Source: Dimorphilus gyrociliatus
Taxonomy: Eukaryota > Animalia > Annelida
DNA: 64,000 nucleotides
NCBI GenBank assembly: GCA_904063045.1
Contig: CAJFCJ010000005.1
Location: 3,997,689 to 4,061,688 of the forward strand
Direction: 5' to 3'
Shown here: positions 1 to 14,547 of the stretch, one piece after another
Layout of the letters: every line of letters begins with the position of its first letter
How positions within the stretch are numbered: position 1 is the stretch's first letter
Position numbers and translations under genes: made by a program
The notes under the pieces: generated by a model
Databases searched by the model: none
What the model saw: the letters and a program-made list of their open reading frames with translations, nothing else
What the model was told of the DNA's origin: nothing

Positions 1-377
1 CAATCGCTAAAGGTAGAATATCAATTGTGAAATTTAAATATTTAATACTAGTGTTGTTATTCCATCGAAAAAATCCTACGACATGTCATATTATTTTATC
101 ATTTCAGAATAATTTATCAAAATTAGGTCGATTTCTATGCATACCAAACGCCTATTATATGGTCTACATGGAGGAGGAAAACCATTTAGATACGCGTGTC
201 AATTTGGTCAACGATCATGCAATAACCGAATTAGTTGATGAGAATAGTCTTAAAAGAGACAAAAAGCCGATAGTCAATTGGTTATTGATAGCGGCTATCT
301 TAGATAGAATGTTATTATGTCTGTATATAATTTTAAATGCCATTACTGCCACATTTATATTCTCTCATCCAGCGTAA
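1..377 (+). CDS. 3' end of a divergent nicotinic acetylcholine receptor-like (Cys-loop) subunit; last exon 108-377, gene starts left of the window
   Basis: AG acceptor at 107, then an open frame ending in the M4-like VNWLLIAAILDRMLLCLYIILNAITATFIF, closely matching M4 of the neighbouring gene (ANWLLLAAVMDRILFIIYILLN). Confidence 0.75.
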   Translation, partial: IAKGRISIVKFKYLILVLLFHRKNPTTCHIILSFQNNLSKLGRFLCIPNAYYMVYMEEENHLDTRVNLVNDHAITELVDENSLKRDKKPIVNWLLIAAILDRMLLCLYIILNAITATFIFSHPA

Positions 378-962
378 CAAATATTTCGAAAATTAGAACC
401 AATACAGTTATTCAGTCTCTCTTTTTTTTATTTGTGTCGCCCTACATCGTATATGGACACATGCGCTGTCTCTTTCTCTCTCTCACTCTCTCACTCTTCC
501 CTCAATAAATTCCATTTGGTTTTATATAGGCTGAAAAATACTTTCTTCTTTTCTCTTTACTTGAAAGCGTAGGCTAATTCTAAAAATATCTTAAGAAAAT
601 ATAAGAGTAGAAAGTACCCAACTTAAAGTCTTTTAACATTAATAATAGTAATAATCGGTGGGTATAATAAATTTTTATTACATACCATATACAGTATATT
701 GCTTATTGAATAGATTTGAATATTCATTCGTCTAGCACAGGAGACCATTATTCAGTTAACTTTATACCCTAAATGCTCTAAATATTCCAATCTTTAGATG
801 ACAAATAGTTTGAAAGGATAGGTAATAGGCTCAGAATTTTTCACCACAATACAAATTTTTAGTTTAAGAGAGTAAAGAGTGTTCAACATACCTGTTCCGC
901 GAGAAATTGTCATTTTTATATCTATATTTATATAGCTTAAGAATTATTATAAAATAAAAATT

Positions 963-2760
963 ATGGACCTTCTTAAGCTCCTAACTTATATATCTTTTGT
1001 TATCCTTCCTCTTTTCCTTTTACCTGCAGTAATTGGGTAAGTAAATTGTCTTTTTACTACGGTTAATAGAGTGTATGTAGTATATATATACAGGATTTAT
1101 ATAATGGTTAGTAATTAATATTATTAATACATACAACACACTATATGGCAATGATAATATTTTATCAAGCCCTTTTAAGAATTCTCTCTCTTTGAACCTA
1201 TATTTCTTTCTCGATTTCACCCATACTAAGCTCTTTCATCATTTTAACCATATTGTTTTCTTTCTAGTGTTACAAGTGCAGAATCGGAGAATTTATATCC
1301 GAATCCTGAACATAAACTTATCAGAAATTTATTAAGCAATTACGAAAGGGGACATAGATCGGCTAGACCAGTGAAGAATATTCATAAAGCACTTCATCTT
1401 AATTTTACGTTATTCTTAAGAAAACTTATCGATTTAGACCCAAAAAATCAAGAATTAACAACATTAATTGAAATTAAATATGAATGGATAGATGAACTTT
1501 TAAAATGGAATGAATCCGCTTATCATGGTATCAAACTCGTCGAAATGAACATTAAAGATATATGGTCACCCAACGTTAGAATATCTGAATTGTTTGTTTC
1601 GAATTAATATTTCATCAATGTTTATTTCATTCACTTTTCTATTTGTTATAGAACTGGTAGGAAAACAGATTTTAATCCAATTGAAGAAGTTATTGTCGAA
1701 TCTTCAGGAAGAGTAACTTTTAATCCTAGGGAAATTTTAAAAACGCCATGTGACGTTGACGTTACTTATTTTCCTTTTGAGAGACAGGTAAAATGGTACA
1801 TTTAATTATAGCGTTACTCATACATTATTAAATAGACTTGCTCACTTTCGTATGTAAACTGGATGCATCATAACAAAGCTGTTTTTCTGAGGCTGAAAAC
1901 ATCAGGTAATCTTCCTTATGATAAATTCTATTTTACACCCGAACCTGGTAATGAATGGGAAATAATCGACGTTCACCAAGATATTTTTTATCACGAACAT
2001 TACGATTTTGAATGCTGTTCTAATAGGAATTTTACAGCAATGATTTTCAAAATAGAATTAAAAAGGAATGCCAGTAAGTTTAGTCGCTTTACCAAAAATA
2101 TGAACAGAATTATACATCATGTAATTATAATTTACAGCCTTTTTAGCCATTGTACTGTTTTTACCATGCTTTTTACTGGTTCTTTTAAATCTTCTATCAA
2201 CATTTATTCCACCCGATTCAAGCGAAAAGATAAATTTGGCTTTGAGTATCTTCCTTAGCTATTTTGTCTTACTAATGATAGTAATGGATCATATACCTAT
2301 GGGAAGAAAGGTTCCAGCAGTTGGTAAGTTTTTTAACAACGCTGAACTGATATCCTTAAGCATAAAATACTTAAAATTCGTAGGTGAACTCATTGTTGCA
2401 AGTTCGGTTATCATAGCCTGCAACATTATTACATCTACCGCTGTCTATAATATTGCCTTGAAAGGTGACGGAGATGCCAAAGTTCCTGATAGAATTAAGA
2501 AAATTATTTTAAAATTACGGAAAAAATTATTCGTACCGGTCAACTATTACGTACATATTCATAGTGATAGTAATGATAACGATATTCCATTAGAAATGAT
2601 GAATGAAGTCGAAATGGAAAATAAAAGGATGCTTAAAAAGCAAAGAAAGAGAAAGGCTAATTGGTTGCTTTTAGCCGCGGTTATGGATCGAATTTTATTT
2701 ATAATATACATACTGTTAAATATCTTTATAAGTATCTTTGTCTTTGTGAGTCCAATCTAA
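963..2760 (+). CDS. Divergent nAChR-like Cys-loop receptor subunit, 6 exons (about 963-1036, 1268-1591, 1652-1787, 1836-2073, 2138-2323, 2384-2760)
   Basis: Signal peptide MDLLKLLTYISFVILPLFLLPAVIG; RPVKN motif; Cys-loop CDVDVTYFPFERQTC across a splice; loop-C vicinal CC; M1-M2 PPDSSEKINLALSIFLSYFVLL; M4 MDRILF. All junction phases are consistent. Confidence 0.9.
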
Positions 2761-3165
2761 GCTTATTAATAGATAAGAAACGAAAGCAGTGAAAACTCAA
2801 TATTTCAAATTCCTACCTTTGATGATATATTTAACTATTGCAAATTTAAATACGCTATATACTATATATACATATATACTGTATATTCAGTATAAAAACA
2901 TGCATATATTCTTGTCTGCAACAAGACAATTGTAAAATATACAGTTTTACAAGCGCTATTGTATTCTTTTAACGTTTTAGTGATATCATTTAATGATATC
3001 TTTTTAAATAAACGAATTTAAAACAATTGAATAAAAGTTTTTCTATTACAACCAACTCTAATCTTATCGAGTAAAGGTGAGTATTGAGGTAAATTTCAAT
3101 AATTATCATATTTAAATTACTTTTCAAGCAGTTCTAATTCTTTTTCACAACTCTGTTAGTCAATC

Positions 3166-4071
3166 ATGAATATTCCTGGTAGTTTTACTTATGATGGTGT
3201 TCTTTATCCTCCAAATACTAACGTTAATATCTTAACTGCAATTAAAGATTTTTCGTTTAGGTCCGATGATGTGTTGGTCTCATCTTTTCCAAAATCTGGT
3301 ACAACTTGGGTTGTTGAGATTGTTGATGAAATTTTGAGAAGAGGTATCGAACCGGATAATGAATCACCTACCTATTTACGAGCGAAAATGCTCGAACTTG
3401 GACCTCCCGCTATTTCCAAATCTGTTATTGATGAAAATAACGACGAGAATTTGATGAAAGGAGAAAAAAGAGTATTCAAAACTCATTTAGCATACACTAG
3501 TCTTCCAAGTGATATAAGATCGGGTCAGTCAAATATTCGGCTTATCTACATTGTCAGAAATGTCAAGGATAATTTGGTATCATTCTATCATTTTTGTCGT
3601 ATGAACGAATTGTATGGACTTTTCAAGGGGTCCTTTTCAGATTTCTATGACTTATGGTTGAATGGGCAGACACCTCATGGCGATTGGTTCGAACACGTTA
3701 AAGGATATTTAGAAAATTCGGTAAATAATGAAAATATATTAATTATATCCTATGAAGAATTGTTAGAAAGTACTTTTGAAATGATCGGGAAGATATCTAC
3801 ATTTTTAAATATCAACCTAGAAGATAAAGTTGTCAAGAGTATCGTTGAGAAAACTAACATAGAAAATATGAGACAGAATAAGAGAACTAATAGGCTAGAA
3901 GTTAAGGCCTATCGGCAGGATATATCCCAATTTTTTCGTAAAGGTATAGCAGGTGACTGGAAGAATTGGTTAAACGAAGAACAGAGTCAGCGAATTGATC
4001 GTCTGTTCGAAGAAAAACTTCCAACTGATATAAGAATTTTGCTGAACAAACTTTTCTTATCTTATAATTGA
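3166..4071 (+). CDS. Cytosolic sulfotransferase (SULT1-like), intronless, 301 aa
   Basis: 5'-PSB loop FPKSGTTW, catalytic His in KTHL, 3'-PB RNVKDNLVSFYHF, C-terminal RKGIAGDWKN motif. Confidence 0.93.
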   Translation: MNIPGSFTYDGVLYPPNTNVNILTAIKDFSFRSDDVLVSSFPKSGTTWVVEIVDEILRRGIEPDNESPTYLRAKMLELGPPAISKSVIDENNDENLMKGEKRVFKTHLAYTSLPSDIRSGQSNIRLIYIVRNVKDNLVSFYHFCRMNELYGLFKGSFSDFYDLWLNGQTPHGDWFEHVKGYLENSVNNENILIISYEELLESTFEMIGKISTFLNINLEDKVVKSIVEKTNIENMRQNKRTNRLEVKAYRQDISQFFRKGIAGDWKNWLNEEQSQRIDRLFEEKLPTDIRILLNKLFLSYN

Positions 4072-4155
4072 ATTGAAAGAAATACGAATATTTTACGAAC
4101 GAAAATTGTAAAACATATTAAAATTATATAGTCGCATTAATTGCAGTAGTATGAT

Positions 4156-5148
4156 TCAGTCTGTTAGGCGTATTGGAGCTGTGTTAATTGATGCACTCCT
4201 TCCGCAGAATAGTTCTTTAGCTTTCCTTCTAAAAAAAGAATTTAAATGTGCGAAGAGGAAAAAGTTTGCTGATGAATTGATGCTTTTCAATACAGTAGCC
4301 AATCTATGATAGTAAAAAAGGAAATGACCGCAAGTCAACATTTCCTTTACGAATAGCGCCGTGATAACGATACGAAAAATCTCAAAGGAATATACTCCAA
4401 TGAAAAGTATATTTACTGCCAATAAGGACTTTGTAACCTGTTTGGTTCTCATTGCAGTTTTTAATTGATTTCCTGTTGCGGTTTTTAAAGTAGTCTTAAG
4501 CTTTTTAAATGTAAGAATTGTCACTATCAGTACGATAAGAAATGGTGCTAATATTGCCAATATTGCGATAAAAACCAATCGGTAAGCTATCGCATAAAAT
4601 CTATTAGCTTTTAGTGACGTCCCTACAACTTCGTAACTTCCTTTAAAAGAGTTAAATTGGGCGTCGTATTCGTAATTTTGAATGAAATATATCATAAATA
4701 GCAAAAAATAAAGGCAACCAGTAATCAATATAGTCTTTAATTTGGTAATACTTTTATAAGTGAATGGTTTACAAACTGCAACGTATCTTTCAGCGGAAAT
4801 TAAAACAGTTGCCCAATTAGACGCCGCGTCAGCCCATTCAGATACACTATTTGTATATTTCAATCCGTATGCTCTGACAATTGAATAATTTTGAAATAGA
4901 TTAAAATTAGCATATTCCAAAAGGTAAGGTAGCCCTAATATAATAAGATAATGAGTAAGAAAGATGGTATCAGCAACTTCCAGAAAGATTACCAGCACTG
5001 CTGTAGCCGATTTTGATTTCATATTGCTCCATATAACAGCCGCCATAATATTAAATATTATTCCAATACTATTTATAACAGTTATAGGCAATCCAAATAT
5101 TAAAAAACGGGTGAAAGGACAAGAGATAGAAAGTGAGGAATTATTCAT
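4156..5148 (-). CDS. Rhodopsin-class peptide-receptor-like GPCR (FMRFamide/sex-peptide-receptor-like orphan), intronless
   Basis: Seven hydrophobic segments; SAERYVAVCKPF in TM3; INSSANFFLF in TM7; first ATG at 5148 (the ORF track starts at an upstream GTG). Confidence 0.85.
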   Translation of the reverse strand: MNNSSLSISCPFTRFLIFGLPITVINSIGIIFNIMAAVIWSNMKSKSATAVLVIFLEVADTIFLTHYLIILGLPYLLEYANFNLFQNYSIVRAYGLKYTNSVSEWADAASNWATVLISAERYVAVCKPFTYKSITKLKTILITGCLYFLLFMIYFIQNYEYDAQFNSFKGSYEVVGTSLKANRFYAIAYRLVFIAILAILAPFLIVLIVTILTFKKLKTTLKTATGNQLKTAMRTKQVTKSLLAVNILFIGVYSFEIFRIVITALFVKEMLTCGHFLFYYHRLATVLKSINSSANFFLFAHLNSFFRRKAKELFCGRSASINTAPIRLTD

Positions 5149-6441
5149 AATCTCTTTTATATCCACTTTTAAAAGTTCATATTAAAACTCCCTTACTGAG
5201 TAAAAATGTTCCTTGAAAGGAATCTGTTATTCTCCTATATATTGAATTTTTATTGTAAATAGTCATATATTTATTAAACCTTTATGTTCTCTTCAGTTAA
5301 AAAAAATCATAATACATACCTTTTCAATTGATAGACAGTTAATTGTAACGTTTGTGTCGGTAGAATTTTAATGGTTATATTATTTTCTTTAAATTCTCTC
5401 CTTTTCTCCTAGTTTGTTTCTGTTTGTCCAGTACTATCAGTGATAACCTCAATATGAATAGTCTTTCTTCGAATGTTAGCCATTGAAGAAGAGTAGAAGA
5501 GCCTTCAGAGGGCGTTCAGTATGTATTATAAGATATCTTTGTACTTATTAAATGATACTTTTTACCCTAGAAACTTAATCTTCAATCCATACATTCATTC
5601 CAAAGGTCGCTTGTTCTATAACAACGGAGACATAAATAACTAATCTCTAACAATTATATTACCTGATTAGATATTTCATGTGAAGAAAGGATGCTAAATA
5701 AATCACTTATATTAGTCCAATACGTTGCTTTGTTTTACTCGCACCGAGATTGTTGGATATCAATTAATGGACTGATCCTTTGTAGCTACAAGCGTGATAG
5801 TAATATTAAAAGTAATCTTAAAAAATAGTATGTAGGCTGAAAGTGGTGTATTATTTACTTTTAGGTTTACTAATTATTGATTATCTAGTAACAGTGATAC
5901 CATCAATCAAATATAGATATATATATATAAATACAACAATATTTATAAGCGAATGGTTTCACTTTCCTTACTCCTTATCTTTATTATTTTTAACAAAAAT
6001 TTCCCAACGCCATCTATTGCAGCATACTAATCTTAATATTAAACTCGTAATTCAATGTAACAAAAACTAGATAAAAGTAATTTCGATTGTCTAAAAATGA
6101 AAATTAAATTGATGCACTTAACCTAATTAATTAGTTAATTATTAAAAGTTACTTTATAATTGTCTTATTTATACTATACAACTTCAATTGTTAGCTTAAA
6201 ATTCTCTAATAAACAGGGTTAAAGTACTAGAAGAGATAATACGTTCTTAAGTAATCCTGCAGGAAAAAAAGGAAAGCTAATAATTTAATGTACACTTTAC
6301 CAAACCTTCATCGGAAAATTTTAATTAAATATTAGTAAATGTCTCTCAAGCGACATCTTTGAACCAACACGAAATTAGTAAGGACATTTCAATACTACTC
6401 TCCATTTAGATAACTTACTTTTTCTCCCCAAAAATATAATA

Positions 6442-7651
6442 ATGGCATTGAATAATATCACATTTCCTTATACTGACAAACCCACTATTCAAAGATCAAC
6501 GTATCCTACCGTAGATTGTCCTGGTTGCTTCGTCATTACTGTCGCAGCAGAACCAGCAGTTGAAGGGTTTAATATGAATTTAATTGAAAATTGGATATTT
6601 GGAGTGTTTACGTCGTTATGTTCTTGTATTATTCTTTTGGGTAACATTCTCGTTATTCTCGCTGTTTTCACATACAGACCTTTGAAAAGCGTTCAAAACT
6701 TCTATATTGTATCCTTAGCCGTTTCCGACCTTCTAATTGCAGTTATTATTCTACCATTCAACATTATAAGCTATATTATGGATCGTTGGGTGTTTGGTAA
6801 AATATTCTGCGAAATTTGGCTAACGGTTGATACGTTCAAATGTACAGTCAGCACCCTTAGCTTGTGTGCGATTGGTTTTGATTGTTATTTTGCCATTCAC
6901 AATTCCATCAATTATATCCCAAAAAGGACTCGGAAGAGAACTTTAACTATAATATTTTTGGCTTGGATAGTATCTTTTCTAATAAATGTTTCACCAGTTT
7001 TTGGATGGAACGTCAGCGAGAATTCGCTCTATCATACAACTGTTATTTGCAAACGTACAAGTGACAAAGGATATATTCTTTATTCTACTTTAATGGGATT
7101 TTTCATTCCTTTGATTATAATGAATCTCATATATTTAATAATATTTATCGTTGACCTAAAAAGATTTAGAGTAAAATCTGTAGAAAGACGAGACATTTCA
7201 CATGTTAACACTCAAATGAATACAATTGTACGAATAGATAGTGGAATATTTTTGAATATTGCTTCAATAGTGAGCCCAAATAAAATTCAACCAGTAATGA
7301 ACAACTCAAATGAGAAATCCGATGAATGTTTTATAAAGAAAAATAGATTCCTTTCCAAAGAACGGCAATCGGCAAAGACTCTGAGTATAATAATGACAGC
7401 TTTTACAATATGTTGGCTACCCTTCTTTCTAATGTAAGAATTACAATTTTAATCATAGATGTTCATAATAATATATTGATTATATTTTTAGGAGTATTAC
7501 TCTTTCTCCTGACGATGCTCATTCGATTCAATTCAAATTTACTATCTGGTTGGGATATACAAGTTCAGCACTTAATCCGATAATTTTTACACTCTTCAAC
7601 ATTAGATTTCGAAGAGCTTTTCAAACTTTATTATCATTAAAGCATCATTAA
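6442..7651 (+). CDS. Biogenic-amine-receptor-like GPCR, copy 1 (exons 6442-7433, 7492-7651)
   Basis: [19 protein letters not shown]3.32 in WLTVD, CWLPFF; the spliced last exon gives [14 protein letters not shown] and helix 8 FRRAF. Confidence 0.88.
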
Positions 7652-8800
7652 ACTAAACTTGAAAAGCTATAATATCCAACTTACAATAGAGATTTAGCTA
7701 TGAATGTTTATTACCGTTACTGTATATATTACTGTATATAATTAGATAGTATGGTTTTGTTCGAAATAAACTAGTACTTAAGGTATTTCTTATTAAAAGC
7801 TTATAAAAGATCAAGCGGGAGTTTACATAAAACTCAATAAGGTTTTGTTGATCTTTAGCATAATCTCTCTTTATCTTTAAGTAGTCGAATGGAAAATATT
7901 TTACATAATAACACTATTACTACTTGATCCTATAACTATAGTTTATTATTAAAATAAAGGTGAAATGAAATCTGACTCATTTAATTATCCGTATTTAGTC
8001 ATTTAATTAAACTTGAGATTTATAAAATCTCTTGAAAATAGTTAAAACTTTACTGAGTGTTAATTAATATATACCGTACGGTTTATATTAAGACCATAAA
8101 GATTTGGAAATTTCTATTTAGGATACATTAATTCTGGATTGGTTTCGTAAGGTGTAATGCTTCAACCTTATTGAGAATGTCTGGGGAATGATAAAGAATA
8201 AAATTTGCTTTGAGCGAATTTTCTAATTTAAATAATTTGTAAAGAAGAATTCAAATTCAATCAGAGACCAATACAGTGGTCAGTAATATACTAAAAGCAA
8301 TAAACAAGTGGTTTGCAAATGTTACAGAAATAGAAAGGAAATAATTGTATTACAACCAATCCACTACATTAAAAATCTTTGGTATATATTAGGACATCTT
8401 CTGGAGTTAAATGTAACCAGTCTAACTAATATATTTAATAATGTATCATAGTTTTAAGTATCCATTAACTTTCTTACTGATTAAAATATTAAACAATATT
8501 AAATGACTATTAAATTTTCTTTAAAAATCCGTATAGTCAATCATTAACTCCATTATTCAGGTAAAAACGATACGTACTAATTGGTTCAATATTTAAAGTT
8601 ACCTTGATTACCTCCTTTAACAACAGGAATTTTCCATCTCAAATTTTTTTTACAAATAGTTTAATTGCTACATCTTATTAAATAGAGGCTCCCTCTAGCA
8701 ACAAACACAATTATGTACTAATATGTTCAATCAGATATCCTTCCAAATCGGCAAAGAATAGCATTTGGATTTTTCCTCTGTTCAAAAAGAAAAGAATAAT

Positions 8801-10019
8801 ATGATTTTAAATACTACTACATTGCTTTACAACGATAGTTTGTATCCTACCGTAGATTGTCCTAGTTGTTCTACCATTACTGATATTTTAAAGCCAGCAG
8901 TTATAGATTATAATACAATTGAAAGTTGGATGCTTAGACTTCTTACGTCGCTATGTGCTTGTGTTATTCTTTTGGGTAACATTCTCGTTATTCTTGCTGT
9001 TTTTACATACAAACCATTGAAAAGCGTTCAAAACTTTTATATCGTATCCCTGGCAGTTTCCGACCTGCTGGTTGCAATTGTTATTCTGCCATTCAACATT
9101 TCAAGCTATATTATGGATCGTGTTGCGTTCGGTGAAATATTCTGCGAGATATGGTTAGCCTTTGAGCTATTAGCCTGTACAGCTAGTATCCTTAACTTAT
9201 GTACGATTGCTTTAGATCGTTATTTTGCCATTCACAATCCCATCAATTACACACAGAAAAGGACTCGGAAACGAAATTTATCGATAATATGTTTGGTTTG
9301 GATAATATCAATCGGAATAAGTGTTCCACCAGTTGTTGGATGGAATGCTAACGGGTATCTGTTTAACGGTACAACTGATTTTTGCCATCATACAACTGAC
9401 TTTGGATTTATTACTTTTTCTAGTATAACAGGGTTTTTCATTCCTATGATTATAATGAATTTGGTATACTTGAAAATTTTTGTTGCAAGTCGAAAACGAT
9501 TTAAAGAAAAGGGGAAATGTACACTGGCATTGGTATCTATACTTCATAACAAAGTTATAAATGAGATGAACCACACAACTGCGAGAGATTTCAATCCAAA
9601 TAAAGTTCAATCAGAAATAACCAATCAGGCATTTCAAACTCATAATTTCTTGGAAGAGAAGAAAAAGCTTTTATTGTCTAAAGAAAGGCGAGGAACAATA
9701 ACAACATGTATAGTCATTGGAGTATATGATATTTGTTTTTTACCTTGTCTCGTATTGTAAGGATTTCACTTTGAATACTTATTAGTATACTTTATTAAAT
9801 AACTGTTTTATATTTAGATATATATTTGGAACTCTTAAAGGAACTTACTACATCTCAAATTGGAGATTTTACCGAGCTGTTACATGGTTTGTATTTGTAA
9901 ACTCAGCAGTTAATCCTATAATCTATACTATCTTTAACAAGGAATTCAGAAAAGCATTTCAAAAATTATTACTCTTCCAGAGTATAAATTTGTCAACAGA
10001 ATCTAAACACAGTATTTAA
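8801..10019 (+). CDS. Biogenic-amine-receptor-like GPCR, copy 2, a tandem paralog (exons 8801-9756, 9818-10019)
   Basis: TM1-TM2 nearly identical to copy 1; ALDRY; intron at the same position and phase; last exon gives [14 protein letters not shown] and FRKAF. Confidence 0.88.
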
Positions 10020-10259
10020 CAAACTTAAAATTGATGTTGTACGAAATAAAAGTATAGTTCAAAATTTTCAAGTTTGGGTCTTTAAACCTTCCATTGTTTG
10101 TCAACATAGATGATTTACATTAATAGGATACACACAATTATTATCCTTTTGTCTATTCGAAACCTATTCTAATTAAGAATAAATTGATTTCCATAAAAAT
10201 AATGTGGCCGCTTCAGTTGGCCAAAAAACATAGTAAAGTCCATGATAATGAACCAACAA

Positions 10260-10680
10260 ATATGAAACATATTTGGAAAATTTACTTCAAAAACTAGATT
10301 GCGCTTTCTAGATGAACCAGTTAAGCGATGAGAGTAAGATTATCTATAGTAAACAAAACTGAACTACATATGAAATTATAACAAAACTATCGGTATCAGA
10401 CAAAAATGATGTGAAGACAATAAAATATATGTTTAAATTATAATATGAAGAAGAAGGTTCTACAATTGAAAAGCTAATATCATTCTTTATTACTTGGTCA
10501 ATGGTTACCGATGAATTTTCACATTATTCACTAAATGAAATTTTAACGTTTTTCTGCAACTGCCTTTCGAATAATTTATATAGCTGAAAATCAATCGGAA
10601 TTCTTTCAGCAAAATACTCAGCCATTAAACATATGACAGATATATTTTATAACGATTTAGAAGCTAAAGTAATGAGTGAT
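10260..10680 (+). pseudogene. Old, heavily decayed copy of the N-terminal part of the ARM-TIR gene at 12301
   Basis: Conceptual fragments LENLLQKLDCAF*MNQLSDESKIIY, STIEKLISFFITWSMVTDEFS, EILTFFCNC and AENQSEFFQQNT align in order with LESSIQQDSSFYVEQLSEKTKPLY, SSIESLLIEWADGSMEFS, QILTVLYNC and DENQSELFQQET; there are stops, frameshifts and deletions. Confidence 0.6.
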
Positions 10681-10689
10681 ATTACTTTT

Positions 10690-11330
10690 GATATTGATTC
10701 AAAATCTTAACATGTTGACAACCCTAAAGATCAATACTGTAATAACTCTCTACGTACAAACTTTTTAATGTTTTTGCTATATAGGCTCCGCAGCTAGCCA
10801 AACTATGAGCGTTAAAACAGTACAAGATACTGTAAAGCATATACAGAAACAGTTAATTTTATGTGGAACAACTATCGGATAAAACAAAGCAGGTTTATGA
10901 GCGTACAAAATATAATATGGATGAGATTATAATTCTGCCCGAAGGATCTTTATCAGATGAGAACTTTAGCTACGTAGAAGAAGCCATACATTCTTTAAGA
11001 CGGTTCATCCATATTTTAAAAATAGAAAAAGCTATAAAAATATTAATTAAAGCTTTAGCAATTGATTTAGTAAACGACAACATTTTGGAAACCATATTTA
11101 ATTTTATAAGACAAATTCCAAAATTAAGGAGAGTTTGGCTTCTTTCTTAGAATCTTTTATGATTGAATGGGCAGACGGATCGAAGGAATTCTCATACGCC
11201 TTCTATCAAGTGGATGAAACTATTAAGTTTTTTATTAAATGTGCTAATGCATCACAGACATATTGGTTTGTTAAATATTGTAAAAGTACAATTATTCTTT
11301 GAAATATAAATAATTTAGACGCTTGGATTA
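10690..11330 (+). pseudogene. Younger 5'-only pseudogene of the ARM-TIR gene, including its duplicated upstream sequence
   Basis: gatattgattcaaaatcttaa...aaccc.aaagatc.atactgt occurs at about 10690 and about 12193. The start ATGGGCTCTG has become ATAGGCTCCG. There is an internal deletion and frameshifts, and homology stops shortly after exon 1. Confidence 0.85.
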
Positions 11331-12300
11331 TCTCGAATAATCTAAAAATGATGTTTGTATATTAATTTTATGCATTTTTCTATCAACCTTCATTCATGAC
11401 ACAATTTACCGAATTTTCTTTTCTTTTTGTTTCAAAAAGAGATATATAACATAAGATTTATAGAATATGTTCGTATCTAGTATGCCATGTCACTGAATTC
11501 GTTTACTGACGCTGCTAAAAACAAAAAAAATAAGTTCCCTTCTGATTGAATCTGAAAGTAGTAGACCTATGCTGAAGGAAGAATAACTAAAAGGTAAAGT
11601 ACATTAAACATAGAAAAGGCTATCAATATCACCTCTTTCAATTCAAAGATGAAAACAATACATAGACATTCTATAGATAGATGATTAGGACTTTTACTAA
11701 CACGTCCAACCAGGAAAAAGAAGATTCTTTCAAGAAAACATTCCAGAGTCGAAAGTGGCTTGCTACGGGTAAATATACATTTATGAGAAAGGGTACGCAA
11801 AAAACTTTTGAAGCCAAGAAAAAGGGCTCATAAAGGTGCTACAGGATTCGTTTATTCCTTTAGCTCATTTTAGTAGAAAGAGGGCTTTTATTTGCTAAGG
11901 GTGATGCTTCATATCATAGATAAGTTATCCATGTTAGGTTTTTACCAGAGAGAGAGAGAGAGAATAACGATGTTGTAAGAAAATCAGAAATATTTAATCC
12001 TTAGTACACTATGGATAAACTATAGCACATAAATTTATATTTATATATATTTTTATAATATTTTATCAAGTTATTTACAATTTTCCAACGGTTATCTATA
12101 GCTTTTTAAGCATTATATGTATATAAATTTTAATCCAAATACCATACACTGCTTATATTGTATTATATTGTATTCTATATGCATTCTAAATAGATATTGA
12201 TTCAAAATCTTAATGTGTTGGCAACCCCAAAGATCGATACTGTGCTGAATAACTCCCAATGACTATCTGCGTAGACACTTATTAATATATCTCCAGTGTT

Positions 12301-14547
12301 ATGGGCTCTGGTACGAGTCGAAATATGAGCGTTAAAACAGTATTAAACGCTGCAAAACAGATACAGAAACTGGAAAGTAGCATACAACAAGATAGCTCAT
12401 TTTATGTGGAACAACTATCGGAGAAAACGAAACCTCTTTATGAGAGTTCAAAAAATAATATGGATGAAACTTTAATTATGCTAGAAGGATCTATAGCAGA
12501 TGAGAGCTTCCACGACATGGAAGAAGCTATAAATTCTTTAACTGCGCTTACATTTACTCGAATAGCGCCAAAAGAGAAAAAAAAACTAGTTAAAGCGTTA
12601 GCAATTGATTTAGTAAACGCAAAGATTTTGGCAACTATTTTTAAGTTATACAAGACGTATTACAAAGATAAGCCAAGTTTGGCTTCTTCTATAGAATCTT
12701 TATTAATTGAATGGGCAGACGGATCGATGGAATTCTCATACGCCTTCTGCAGGGTGGATGGAGCTATTAAATTTTTTGTTGAATGTGCTGATGTATCACC
12801 TCAGGAGATATTGGTTAGTTAAATATAGTAATAGTGATATTAATCTTTTATTTTATAATCTTTCCAATAGTCGAATAGTAATCAGATGGAACAGATTTTA
12901 ACAGTATTGTATAACTGTGCTCGATTTACTGAATGTAAAATGCTTTTAAAATGCCATAATAGTGTGGATATTTTATTCAAATATACAAAGATAAAAAATT
13001 CAGATTTGAAACTACTAGCAGTATTATTTCTGGCTAATATTGTTGATGAAAATCAATCAGAACTATTTCAACAAGAGACATCTGGCATAAAATATCTAAT
13101 AATTACTTTTATTCAAACAATAAAGAGCAAATCCAAAAGATTTGGTGGCTGGTCTGCTGAGGAGCTTGCGCAAGGTTTGTTTATATATTTTATTCTATTT
13201 TCTTTTAAAATATATCTACTATACTATGTAGACTGTTGGTTTCGTTTATTGCTTTATGTACAATAATTTTTTCCCTTTTAAACAATCATTTAGGTATATC
13301 AAAACTCGCAATAAATGATAAGAATAAAAAGTTATTGGTTGAGAATGGAACACTACCTCCTCTCTATAAATTAATTGATATTGGCGATGATGATGAAATA
13401 AACGTCAGCTGTCAGGCGATTTGGAATTTAGCTTTTGAAGCTGAAAATAAAGAGATAATTTTCAAGAATAAATCTTTAATGGATACTATTAGAAAACTTT
13501 CACAATCGAACAAAGCATATCAAAAAGCTGCTCAGGGAATCATTTTTCTCTATGAAGAATATGAGGATAGTAAAAAGTCAAAAGACCAACGGAAATCATC
13601 TATTGTTAATTCGGACACGGGACATATAATGATCAGTTATCAATGGGGTAATCAAAATGTTTTAAAACAACTTAGCGGCTTCCTTAAGAAACATGATTAT
13701 AAAATATGGATGGATATAGAGAATATGGGTGGTTCTACTCTTCAAGCCATGGCAGAGGCCGTTGAACAATCATCCATTATTCTTCTATGTATTTCGGAAA
13801 AGTATAAAGAGAGTCCTAATTGTCGTATGGGTAAGTTTTCAGTATAACTGTAACTGTTCAATTTATGAAAATGTTAATAATGAAACTTCAGAGGCCGAAT
13901 ACGCATTGAGAAGAAACAAAAGATTCATTCCACTCCTAATGGAAAGAGGCTATCAACCAGACGGATGGCTTGGTATTATGGTTGGAACTCGGCTCTATTA
14001 TGACTTTTCGGGAAAGTATGCTTTTGATGAAAAAGCAACAGAATTAGTAAGAGAATTAGGAAATGAAGGAAAGGCTTCCACAGTAAGATAATAAGTAAAA
14101 ATCAAATGCTAAATATCTTTAATTATAAAAAATTTCTTTAAAGAAAAATTCAAATCACATTATGAAGCAAATTAATTCTTCCTCAACAACGGCAGCTCCA
14201 CCGTATATTAGTAATGCTCCTGTTGTAAGAGCAAATCAAATGCCATCTTTAAAAAGCTGGAATAAACAAGATTTAGAAAACTGGATTAATTCCAATAACC
14301 TGCAAAAATTGTTCGTATAAAATAATTTCATGTTCATTCATTGAAATTCAAATTTCGAATTTATGTTAAATGTTTGATTCTTTCCAGTTTCACTTCGGCA
14401 ACGATGTCAGTTGAAAAGCTAATTTTTCTTCAATCGTTAAAGAGGGAAGCACCTGAATTCTTTTATAAAACCGTGAAGGATGAATATAAAATGAAAGGAA
14501 TTGATGACATTATGCTATTCTCAGATAGCTTTAAGAAATTACCTTGA
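12301..14547 (+). CDS. ARM-repeat / TIR (TIR_2-type) / C-terminal SAM-like protein with an N-myristoylation motif, 6 exons (12301-12813, 12871-13174, 13294-13830, 13892-14082, 14144-14310, 14388-14547)
   Basis: MGSGTS start; helical ARM-like segments (LAINDKNKKLLVENGTLPPL, QAIWNLAF); TIR HIMISYQW...WMDIENM...AVEQS...ISEKYKESPNCRMEAEYA...FIPLLME...WLG; SAM-like LKSWNKQDLENWINSNNL. All five junctions are phase-consistent. Confidence 0.88.

Follow-up and report, generated by a model that had tools for sequence, protein, structure and literature searches.

Two adjacent class A G-protein-coupled receptor (GPCR) genes, each of two exons, lie in tandem on the + strand within positions 6442-10019 of a 64,000-nucleotide stretch of DNA, which is called the window throughout. 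The explanation that we favor, with a confidence only somewhat above even, is that they are young, lineage-specific tandem duplicates of a type 1 tyramine receptor (TAR1) gene which evolve more than 10 times faster than the canonical gene, and that each of them has been kept open and transcribed. In the first gene (copy 1) the amine-binding pocket is almost complete and the activation switch is damaged, while in the second (copy 2) the switch is kept and the pocket is altered. The receptor family is known and the pair are new, very divergent members of it; an unusual variant is that two sister genes have lost complementary modules so cleanly while D. gyrociliatus offers the parent gene for comparison. 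No description of a complementary pair of this kind surfaced in the literature, in which no search was aimed at such a pair. With the intact parent gene of Dimorphilus gyrociliatus as a control, the pair amounts to a small experiment of nature that asks which of two modules selection continues to protect once a gene is duplicated, and it bears on the speed at which a GPCR can leave its family.

Structure, origin and age of the pair

Copy 1 consists of a first exon (6442-7433) that runs from the N-terminus to transmembrane helix 6 (TM6), a 58-nt GT..AG intron (7434-7491) and a second exon for TM7 and helix 8 (7492-7651), as read from the sequence, its open reading frame (ORF), its translation, Pfam and the residue table described below. 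Copy 2 consists of a first exon (8801-9756), defined by sequence, Pfam, the residue table and alignment with 5-HT1A, a 61-nt intron (9757-9817) that is recognized in the sequence and in an RNA contig with the joint 9756>9818, and a second exon for TM7 and helix 8 (9818-10019), which is supported by translation and covered by the spliced contig. In both genes the intron lies in phase 2 within the codon that follows residue 6.54. The intron sizes agree with the median intron of D. gyrociliatus, which is 66 bp (PMC7854359), and the G+C content of the window also fits this species. The encoded proteins have 383 (copy 1) and 385 (copy 2) amino acids, and both frames are open with no stop or frameshift. 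A sequence-only reading of this DNA had already described intact frames and a common intron position, which direct reading of both genes bore out, with small corrections to the gene ends (the ATG of copy 2 is at 8801, the stop codon of copy 1 at 7649-7651). The exon pieces of both copies were searched and aligned separately. Exon 1 alone matched Pfam 7tm_1 with E 8e-50 in copy 1 and E 4e-53 in copy 2, that is with 170 and 181 bits at a cut-off of 30.5, which places both in class A. The two copies are 51% identical to each other and are the sole two such genes in the window, which is AT-rich (G+C ~30%). Their best solved relatives are 5-HT1A and the alpha-2A/alpha-1A receptors.

In a maximum-likelihood tree the two copies were sisters with support of 100/99, on very long branches (2.66 for the stem of the pair, 2.59 and 1.83 for the end branches). 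The pair fell inside the annelid TAR1 clade, the joining node having support of 89/93 with long branches, and there it formed a polytomy with a D. gyrociliatus protein (P0118, end branch 0.11) and the Capitella/Platynereis "orphan GPCR 48" group. The Platynereis member of this group (P0128) is the Tyramine-1 receptor, for which the half-maximal effective concentration of tyramine is nanomolar (PMC5282848). P0118 is the canonical TAR1 of D. gyrociliatus; every invariant residue is present in it, and its gene (L003 6001-7307, on CAJFCJ010000003.1 of assembly GCA_904063045.1) has an intron at the exact codon and phase of the introns of the pair. The public P0118 model (363 aa) runs into this intron and is without TM7; the exon that it misses lies ~60 nt downstream and has canonical W7.40, Y7.43, N7.45 and NPxxY. 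The shared codon and phase of the intron, together with the canonical TM7 residues of the P0118 gene, indicate that the pair derives from a TAR1 of the intron-bearing type. The pair and TAR1 (P0118 and P0128) have in common their clade, the intron (in the D. gyrociliatus gene) and the class A core, but their identity is only about 40% and the branches of the pair are more than 10 times longer. If both are in one genome, the pair is a supernumerary, fast-evolving extra beside the canonical TAR1. The top matches to the pair in ENA were intronless genes on metagenome contigs, and word-based protein searches of an incomplete collection found no relative closer than 42-55% identity. A search by exact sequence gave no record of exon 1 of copy 1 or of the sulfotransferase ORF described below.

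The age of the pair was examined by comparison with a related species that is equally distant from the window and from D. gyrociliatus (70-74% coding identity). Synteny between the window and a 20-kb contig of this species (L007) extends to either side of the pair (window 97-5148 and 10836-14547), the shared genes being nAChR-like genes, a sulfotransferase, a minus-strand GPCR and TIR-domain genes. Nothing on this contig corresponds to the 5.7 kb of the pair, the gap there measuring 2.4 kb and tblastn giving no match; word-based searches at the protein level likewise turned up no orthologue in the related species, in a collection that is incomplete and leaves absence unproven.

Divergence between the two copies is a mosaic along the gene. 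For both exons together synonymous divergence (dS) is 0.69, non-synonymous divergence (dN) 0.37 and dN/dS 0.53; the respective values are 0.47, 0.23 and 0.49 for TM1-TM5, 1.9, 0.53 and 0.28 for TM6, and 0.8, 0.53 and 0.64 for exon 2. The younger, more similar tract is TM1-TM5 (6501-7175 in copy 1 and 8842-9510 in copy 2, + strand), with 76.7% nucleotide identity over 675 nt, and no nucleotide similarity between the copies was found in flanks or introns. Between D. gyrociliatus and the related species the canonical TAR1 has a dS of about 2, a dN of 0.077 and a dN/dS of 0.035, and three neighboring genes compared between species have a dS of about 2, a dN of 0.14-0.26 and a dN/dS of 0.07-0.16. 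Synonymous sites between the pair and the canonical gene are saturated. Since dS in TM1-TM5 is 0.47 and that between the species about 2, this part of the pair split, or was last homogenized by gene conversion, well after the divergence from the related species. The relative rate of change of TM1-TM5 in the pair since then is about 14-fold that of the canonical gene.

These rates also bear on another explanation, that the copies are redundant duplicates drifting to pseudogenes, in which the first disabling hit freed the rest of its module; the finding would then be ordinary duplicate turnover. Such decay seems unlikely to us. It would account for a dN/dS of about 0.5, which rises to about 1 in the windows over loop 2/TM5 and the N-terminus, and for the loss of residues that are invariant in 170 relatives, and it agrees with the availability of a canonical TAR1 and the absence of the pair from the related species. 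Against it are the strong constraint on TM1-TM2 between the copies (dN 0.03-0.08, dN/dS about 0.05-0.3) and the intact ORFs of 383 and 385 codons. In simulations of neutral evolution, which used the base composition of this genome and an ORF of the pair's size, the frame stayed open in 7% of cases at 0.05 changes per site, in 0.6% at 0.1 and in 0/4000 at 0.2, and in TM1-TM5 each copy has accrued about 0.23 changes per synonymous site. When all synonymous and non-synonymous differences are pooled, dN/dS is below 1 (p 6e-6), and Tajima-type counts against ten outgroups and a consensus were symmetric (25 vs 24), so that neither copy is faster. The simulated loss of ORFs and the sub-neutral dN/dS together indicate that selection preserved both frames at least up to the very recent past, under a constraint much weaker than that on the parent. 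The marks of a pseudogene are thus not found, as there is no stop or frameshift, the pooled dN/dS of 0.5 is significantly below 1 and the intron is kept; neutral evolution of either copy, which the sequence-only reading would have counted against itself, is not what is seen.

Residues kept and lost in each copy

The numbering of the residues was verified by comparison with 56 relatives at first, then with 170 (insects, crustaceans, priapulids, molluscs, annelids, rotifers, echinoderms and fish alpha-1A receptors), and with human 5-HT1A, and every residue that the sequence-only reading had called in both copies proved right. Exon 1 of copy 1 codes for D3.32, K3.35, T3.40, DCY, S34.50 and CWLPFF, and exon 2 for W7.40, Y7.43, S7.45 and NPIIF. 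Copy 1 has therefore kept D3.32, W6.48, F6.51, F6.52, W7.40 and Y7.43, while DRY and NPxxY are altered to DCY and NPIIF. Exon 1 of copy 2 codes for V23.50, E3.32, DRY, P34.50, Y6.44 and CFLPCL, and exon 2 for W7.40, F7.41, V7.42, F7.43, N7.45 and NPIIY; here DRY, NPIIY and W7.40 are kept and E3.32, F6.48, C6.51, L6.52 and F7.43 are altered. D3.32, R3.50, I3.40 and the loop-1 tryptophan (W23.50) are invariant in 170/170 relatives, and W6.48 and F6.44 (169/169 each) and F6.51 (165/165) are invariant where aligned. Near-invariant are F6.52 (164/165), Y7.53 (157/158), N7.45 (155/156), G7.42 (157/158) and Y7.43 (155/157). In amine receptors D3.32, R3.50, W6.48 and Y7.53 are regarded as all but indispensable, and here they are dismantled separately in sister genes.

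An unbiased scan of the 64 columns conserved at a level of at least 90% found six changes in copy 1 only (I3.40T, R3.50C, P34.50S, which lies in loop 2 on the cytoplasmic side, S4.57N, N7.45S and Y7.53F), ten in copy 2 only (W23.50V, D3.32E, F6.44Y, W6.48F, F6.51C, F6.52L, L6.53V, L7.41F, G7.42V and Y7.43F) and two common to both. Both copies have G5.46, where 164/170 relatives have S5.46, and both keep N1.50, D2.50, W4.50, P5.50, Y5.58, E6.30, N7.49 and P7.50. When the changes are counted as hits to pocket and switch, copy 1 scores 0/5 and copy 2 scores 6/1 (Fisher p 0.015), and a rough rank test of the membrane depth of copy-specific changes gave p 0.012, both tests being post hoc. The partition of the losses between pocket and switch is unlikely to have arisen by chance. 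When the aminergic pocket is taken as D3.32, W6.48, F6.51, F6.52, Y7.43 and S5.42/S5.46, copy 1 has all of it but for G5.46, and copy 2 differs by E3.32, F6.48, C6.51, L6.52, F7.43 and G5.46. When the switch is taken as DRY, the PIF residues I3.40/F6.44, N7.45 and NPxxY, copy 2 has all of it but for Y6.44, and copy 1 differs by DCY, T3.40, S7.45 and NPIIF, to which S34.50 is added. In relation to TAR1, copy 1 is without R3.50, I3.40, P34.50, N7.45 and Y7.53, and copy 2 without D3.32, W6.48, F6.51, F6.52, G7.42, Y7.43 and W23.50.

Drift of a whole gene would be expected to hit both modules, and complementary losses argue that the intact module of each copy is still in use; the pattern fits selection that still acts on a different module in each copy. 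It likewise speaks against decay, since the other module of each copy is essentially unhit among the conserved columns, the changed Y6.44 of copy 2 being the one switch hit beside six in its pocket.

It may also be that the changes are tolerated and both copies are still ordinary G-protein-coupled amine receptors, copy 1 coupling in spite of its altered motifs and copy 2 binding amines through E3.32, which we think doubtful. The substitutions E3.32, which keeps a carboxylate, and F6.48 and F7.43, which keep aromaticity, would be compatible with this, as would the presence of D2.50, N1.50, W4.50, P5.50, Y5.58, E6.30 and N7.49 in both copies. The R137C/L mutations of the vasopressin V2 receptor, of which R137C corresponds exactly to R3.50C of copy 1, lead to constitutive, ligand-insensitive activity that drives cAMP and to arrestin recruitment, and not to silence (PMC2792721, PMC7272623), although in V2 this is a disease mutation. 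Tolerance would, however, have to extend to five switch and coupling sites in copy 1 and to seven or more pocket sites in copy 2, all of them invariant or nearly so in the 170 relatives, and the main RNA of copy 2 is deprived of S5.42, S5.43 and the loop-2 cysteine, as described below.

Two further features of the coding sequences were noted. Halfway along TM3, copy 1 carries a lysine (K3.35, 6838-6840); in the 170 relatives this residue is C, T, L, I, A or M. By its placement the lysine could reach D2.50 in the sodium pocket. Near the N-terminus both copies have the motif YPTVDCPxC (6502-6528 and 8843-8869), where the canonical gene has NCSDC; the CPxC of fish alpha-1A receptors is similar.

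Transcription and splicing

The RNA evidence comes from one public run with contigs covering 5900-10500; such contigs show presence and not absence. The run behaves as RNA, in that the intergenic stretch 7748-8363 and the copy 2 intron are uncovered and three GT..AG joints are present. Both copies are transcribed at a low level, and the sequence-only reading, which would have fallen with an untranscribed copy, stands in this respect. Copy 1 is covered from 6267 onward at a depth of about 5-7. Copy 2 is represented by an 842-nt contig of depth 10.5, which carries the expected 9756>9818 splice.

The same contig has a joint that skips a 69-nt in-frame GT..AG segment of copy 2 (9355-9423, + strand), which has a good polypyrimidine tract and a CTGAC branch-like site. 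Depth in the bin 9288-9441 is 5.8, exactly the contribution of the 842-nt contig itself, which means that no contig retains the segment, and in this run it behaves as an intron. It encodes 23 amino acids, among them the loop-2 cysteine that is the partner of C3.25 and residues 5.38-5.43 of TM5 including S5.42 and S5.43; the predicted product of the skip has 362 aa and a loop 2 of about five residues. The copy 2 protein modeled in the sequence-only reading is hence probably not the main product, the transcript in this one RNA set being without the 23 codons. The removal of a 69-nt in-frame coding piece from copy 2 RNA, seen in one data set, resembles exitrons and intronization and is a possible case of coding sequence becoming intron. 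Melanocortin-type receptors have a very short loop 2 and no disulfide between TM3 and loop 2, and the predicted short product of copy 2, with its five or so residues and no disulfide, is like them. A second GT..AG segment of copy 2, of 56 nt (9201-9256, + strand), is skipped in a minority of its RNA (joint 9200>9257, depth 2.4), by which the frame is shifted and the DRY region removed; by arithmetic on bin depths, a depth of about 6.5 retains this segment. Under decay, the frame-shifting skip of 56 nt and the in-frame skip of 69 nt would be read as symptoms of aberrant splicing, and a copy 1 contig that reads into the last intron and the low expression would be in accordance with it.

Several points weigh against the explanation that we favor. 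The single RNA run is of low depth (about 5-10) and comes from an undescribed sample. In copy 1, the contig 7099-7451 enters the intron by 18 nt, and no joint across this intron is listed in the run, although exon 2 is covered; if the intron were retained, the protein would stop right after TM6 and have six helices. The dN/dS values come from two sequences, from which relaxed constraint and positive selection are inseparable and which give no value per branch. The two tests of the residue partition, as post hoc tests, are supportive and not conclusive, and that the canonical TAR1 belongs to the genome of the pair is likely rather than certain.

Two further features of the RNA run were also observed. 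Upstream of copy 2 there is a 210-nt transcribed piece (8469-8678) at a depth of 4.3. No contig covers the gap (8679-8825) between this piece and the first covered coding sequence, and the predicted ATG of copy 2 falls within the gap; the piece could be a 5' exon or a separate transcript. At the end of copy 1, a contig with a bin mean depth of about 205 matches only 75 nt (7594-7668), that is the coding end and 17 nt beyond, and the letters of its continuation past 7668 were found nowhere in the window. It could represent an antisense transcript, a chimeric transcript or an assembly artefact.

Possible roles of the two copies, and neighboring genes

As we see the history of these young duplicates, constraint would have been relaxed differently in each copy after duplication, and the canonical TAR1 of D. 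gyrociliatus would carry ordinary tyramine signaling. Copy 1 has kept a near-complete amine pocket and lost five activation and coupling residues. Judged from its residues, it probably still binds tyramine or a close amine, and the usual G-protein switch driven by agonist is probably missing from it; the protein may be silent, biased toward arrestin or constitutively active. In copy 2 the switch set is kept, Y6.44 apart, and the pocket is rebuilt, with loop 2 and the top of TM5 deleted in the main RNA. Copy 2 has probably lost the canonical response to tyramine, and its coupling to G proteins could persist. It may now be an orphan or constitutively active, or it may serve a new ligand that enters through an open mouth with a short loop. 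The sequence-only reading had proposed subfunctionalization, and this holds in so far as the losses sort by module and both genes are intact, transcribed and of equal rate. The parent's job, however, would be kept by the canonical TAR1, and if this gene of D. gyrociliatus is in the same genome, the pair is better described as an extra than as a split of the ancestral job.

For copy 1 a binding-only decoy had also been suggested. Atypical (scavenger) chemokine receptors and C5L2 bind their ligand, have an altered DRY and give no classical G-protein signal (PMC3072526), and with copy 1 they share the altered DRY and the kept ligand pocket, so that they can serve as a model of a decoy. The atypical chemokine receptors have protein ligands and scavenge through internalization, whereas copy 1 is a derivative of an amine receptor. 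Amines are normally cleared by transporters and enzymes, and we know of no amine decoy receptor; the pair bears on whether such a decoy, or a constitutively active derivative of an amine receptor, exists. DCY with a kept pocket speaks for the suggestion, but R3.50C is no proof of a dead switch, and because the same change makes the V2 receptor constitutively active, a decoy is an option for copy 1 and not a deduction.

The sequence-only reading had further considered an obligate class A heterodimer, in which amine-binding copy 1 would trans-activate G-protein-coupling copy 2 as in GABA-B. We hold this to be very improbable, and a natural complementation pair in the strict sense, a switch-dead binder and a pocket-dead coupler that work only together by trans-activation, to be a shade more improbable still; if true, it would be the first natural GABA-B-like division of labor among rhodopsin-type amine receptors. 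The defects are complementary and follow the modules, and the genes are adjacent, on the same strand and of similar low RNA depth in the one bulk run. In GABA-B, and between engineered binding-deficient and signaling-deficient mutants of the LH/FSH receptors, which complement each other, binding and coupling are divided between protomers (PMC4326798, PMC6301190). However, the gonadotropin receptors that complement each other are engineered and show only what is possible in principle, and GABA-B belongs to class C and has large extracellular domains and a coiled-coil tail, neither of which is present in the pair. Past the helix 8 motif the C-terminal tail continues for 11 residues in copy 1 and for 26 in copy 2, too few for a coiled coil of the GABA-B type, and no other device for dimerization is present; copy 2 RNA loses loop 2, and tyramine signaling is already supplied by the canonical receptor. 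To our knowledge, no natural obligate heterodimer of class A exists.

Among the neighboring genes, an intact single-exon cytosolic sulfotransferase (3166-4071, + strand; Sulfotransfer_1 E 3e-59) immediately precedes three GPCR genes, two of them derived from an amine receptor; it is 63% identical to its orthologue in the related species, with a dN/dS of 0.16. The third GPCR gene is a Srw-like class A ORF (4159-5166, - strand; 7tm_1 E 3e-13), which is unrelated to the pair and conserved in the related species (74% identity, dN/dS 0.07). In the related species itself (Logan SRR23372228), a very divergent amine-type receptor of 469 aa (P0051, L004 17584-18993) is situated 6.5 kb downstream of the canonical TAR1; the tree places it, with a very long branch, outside the TAR1 clade, and it has S3.36 where relatives have C.

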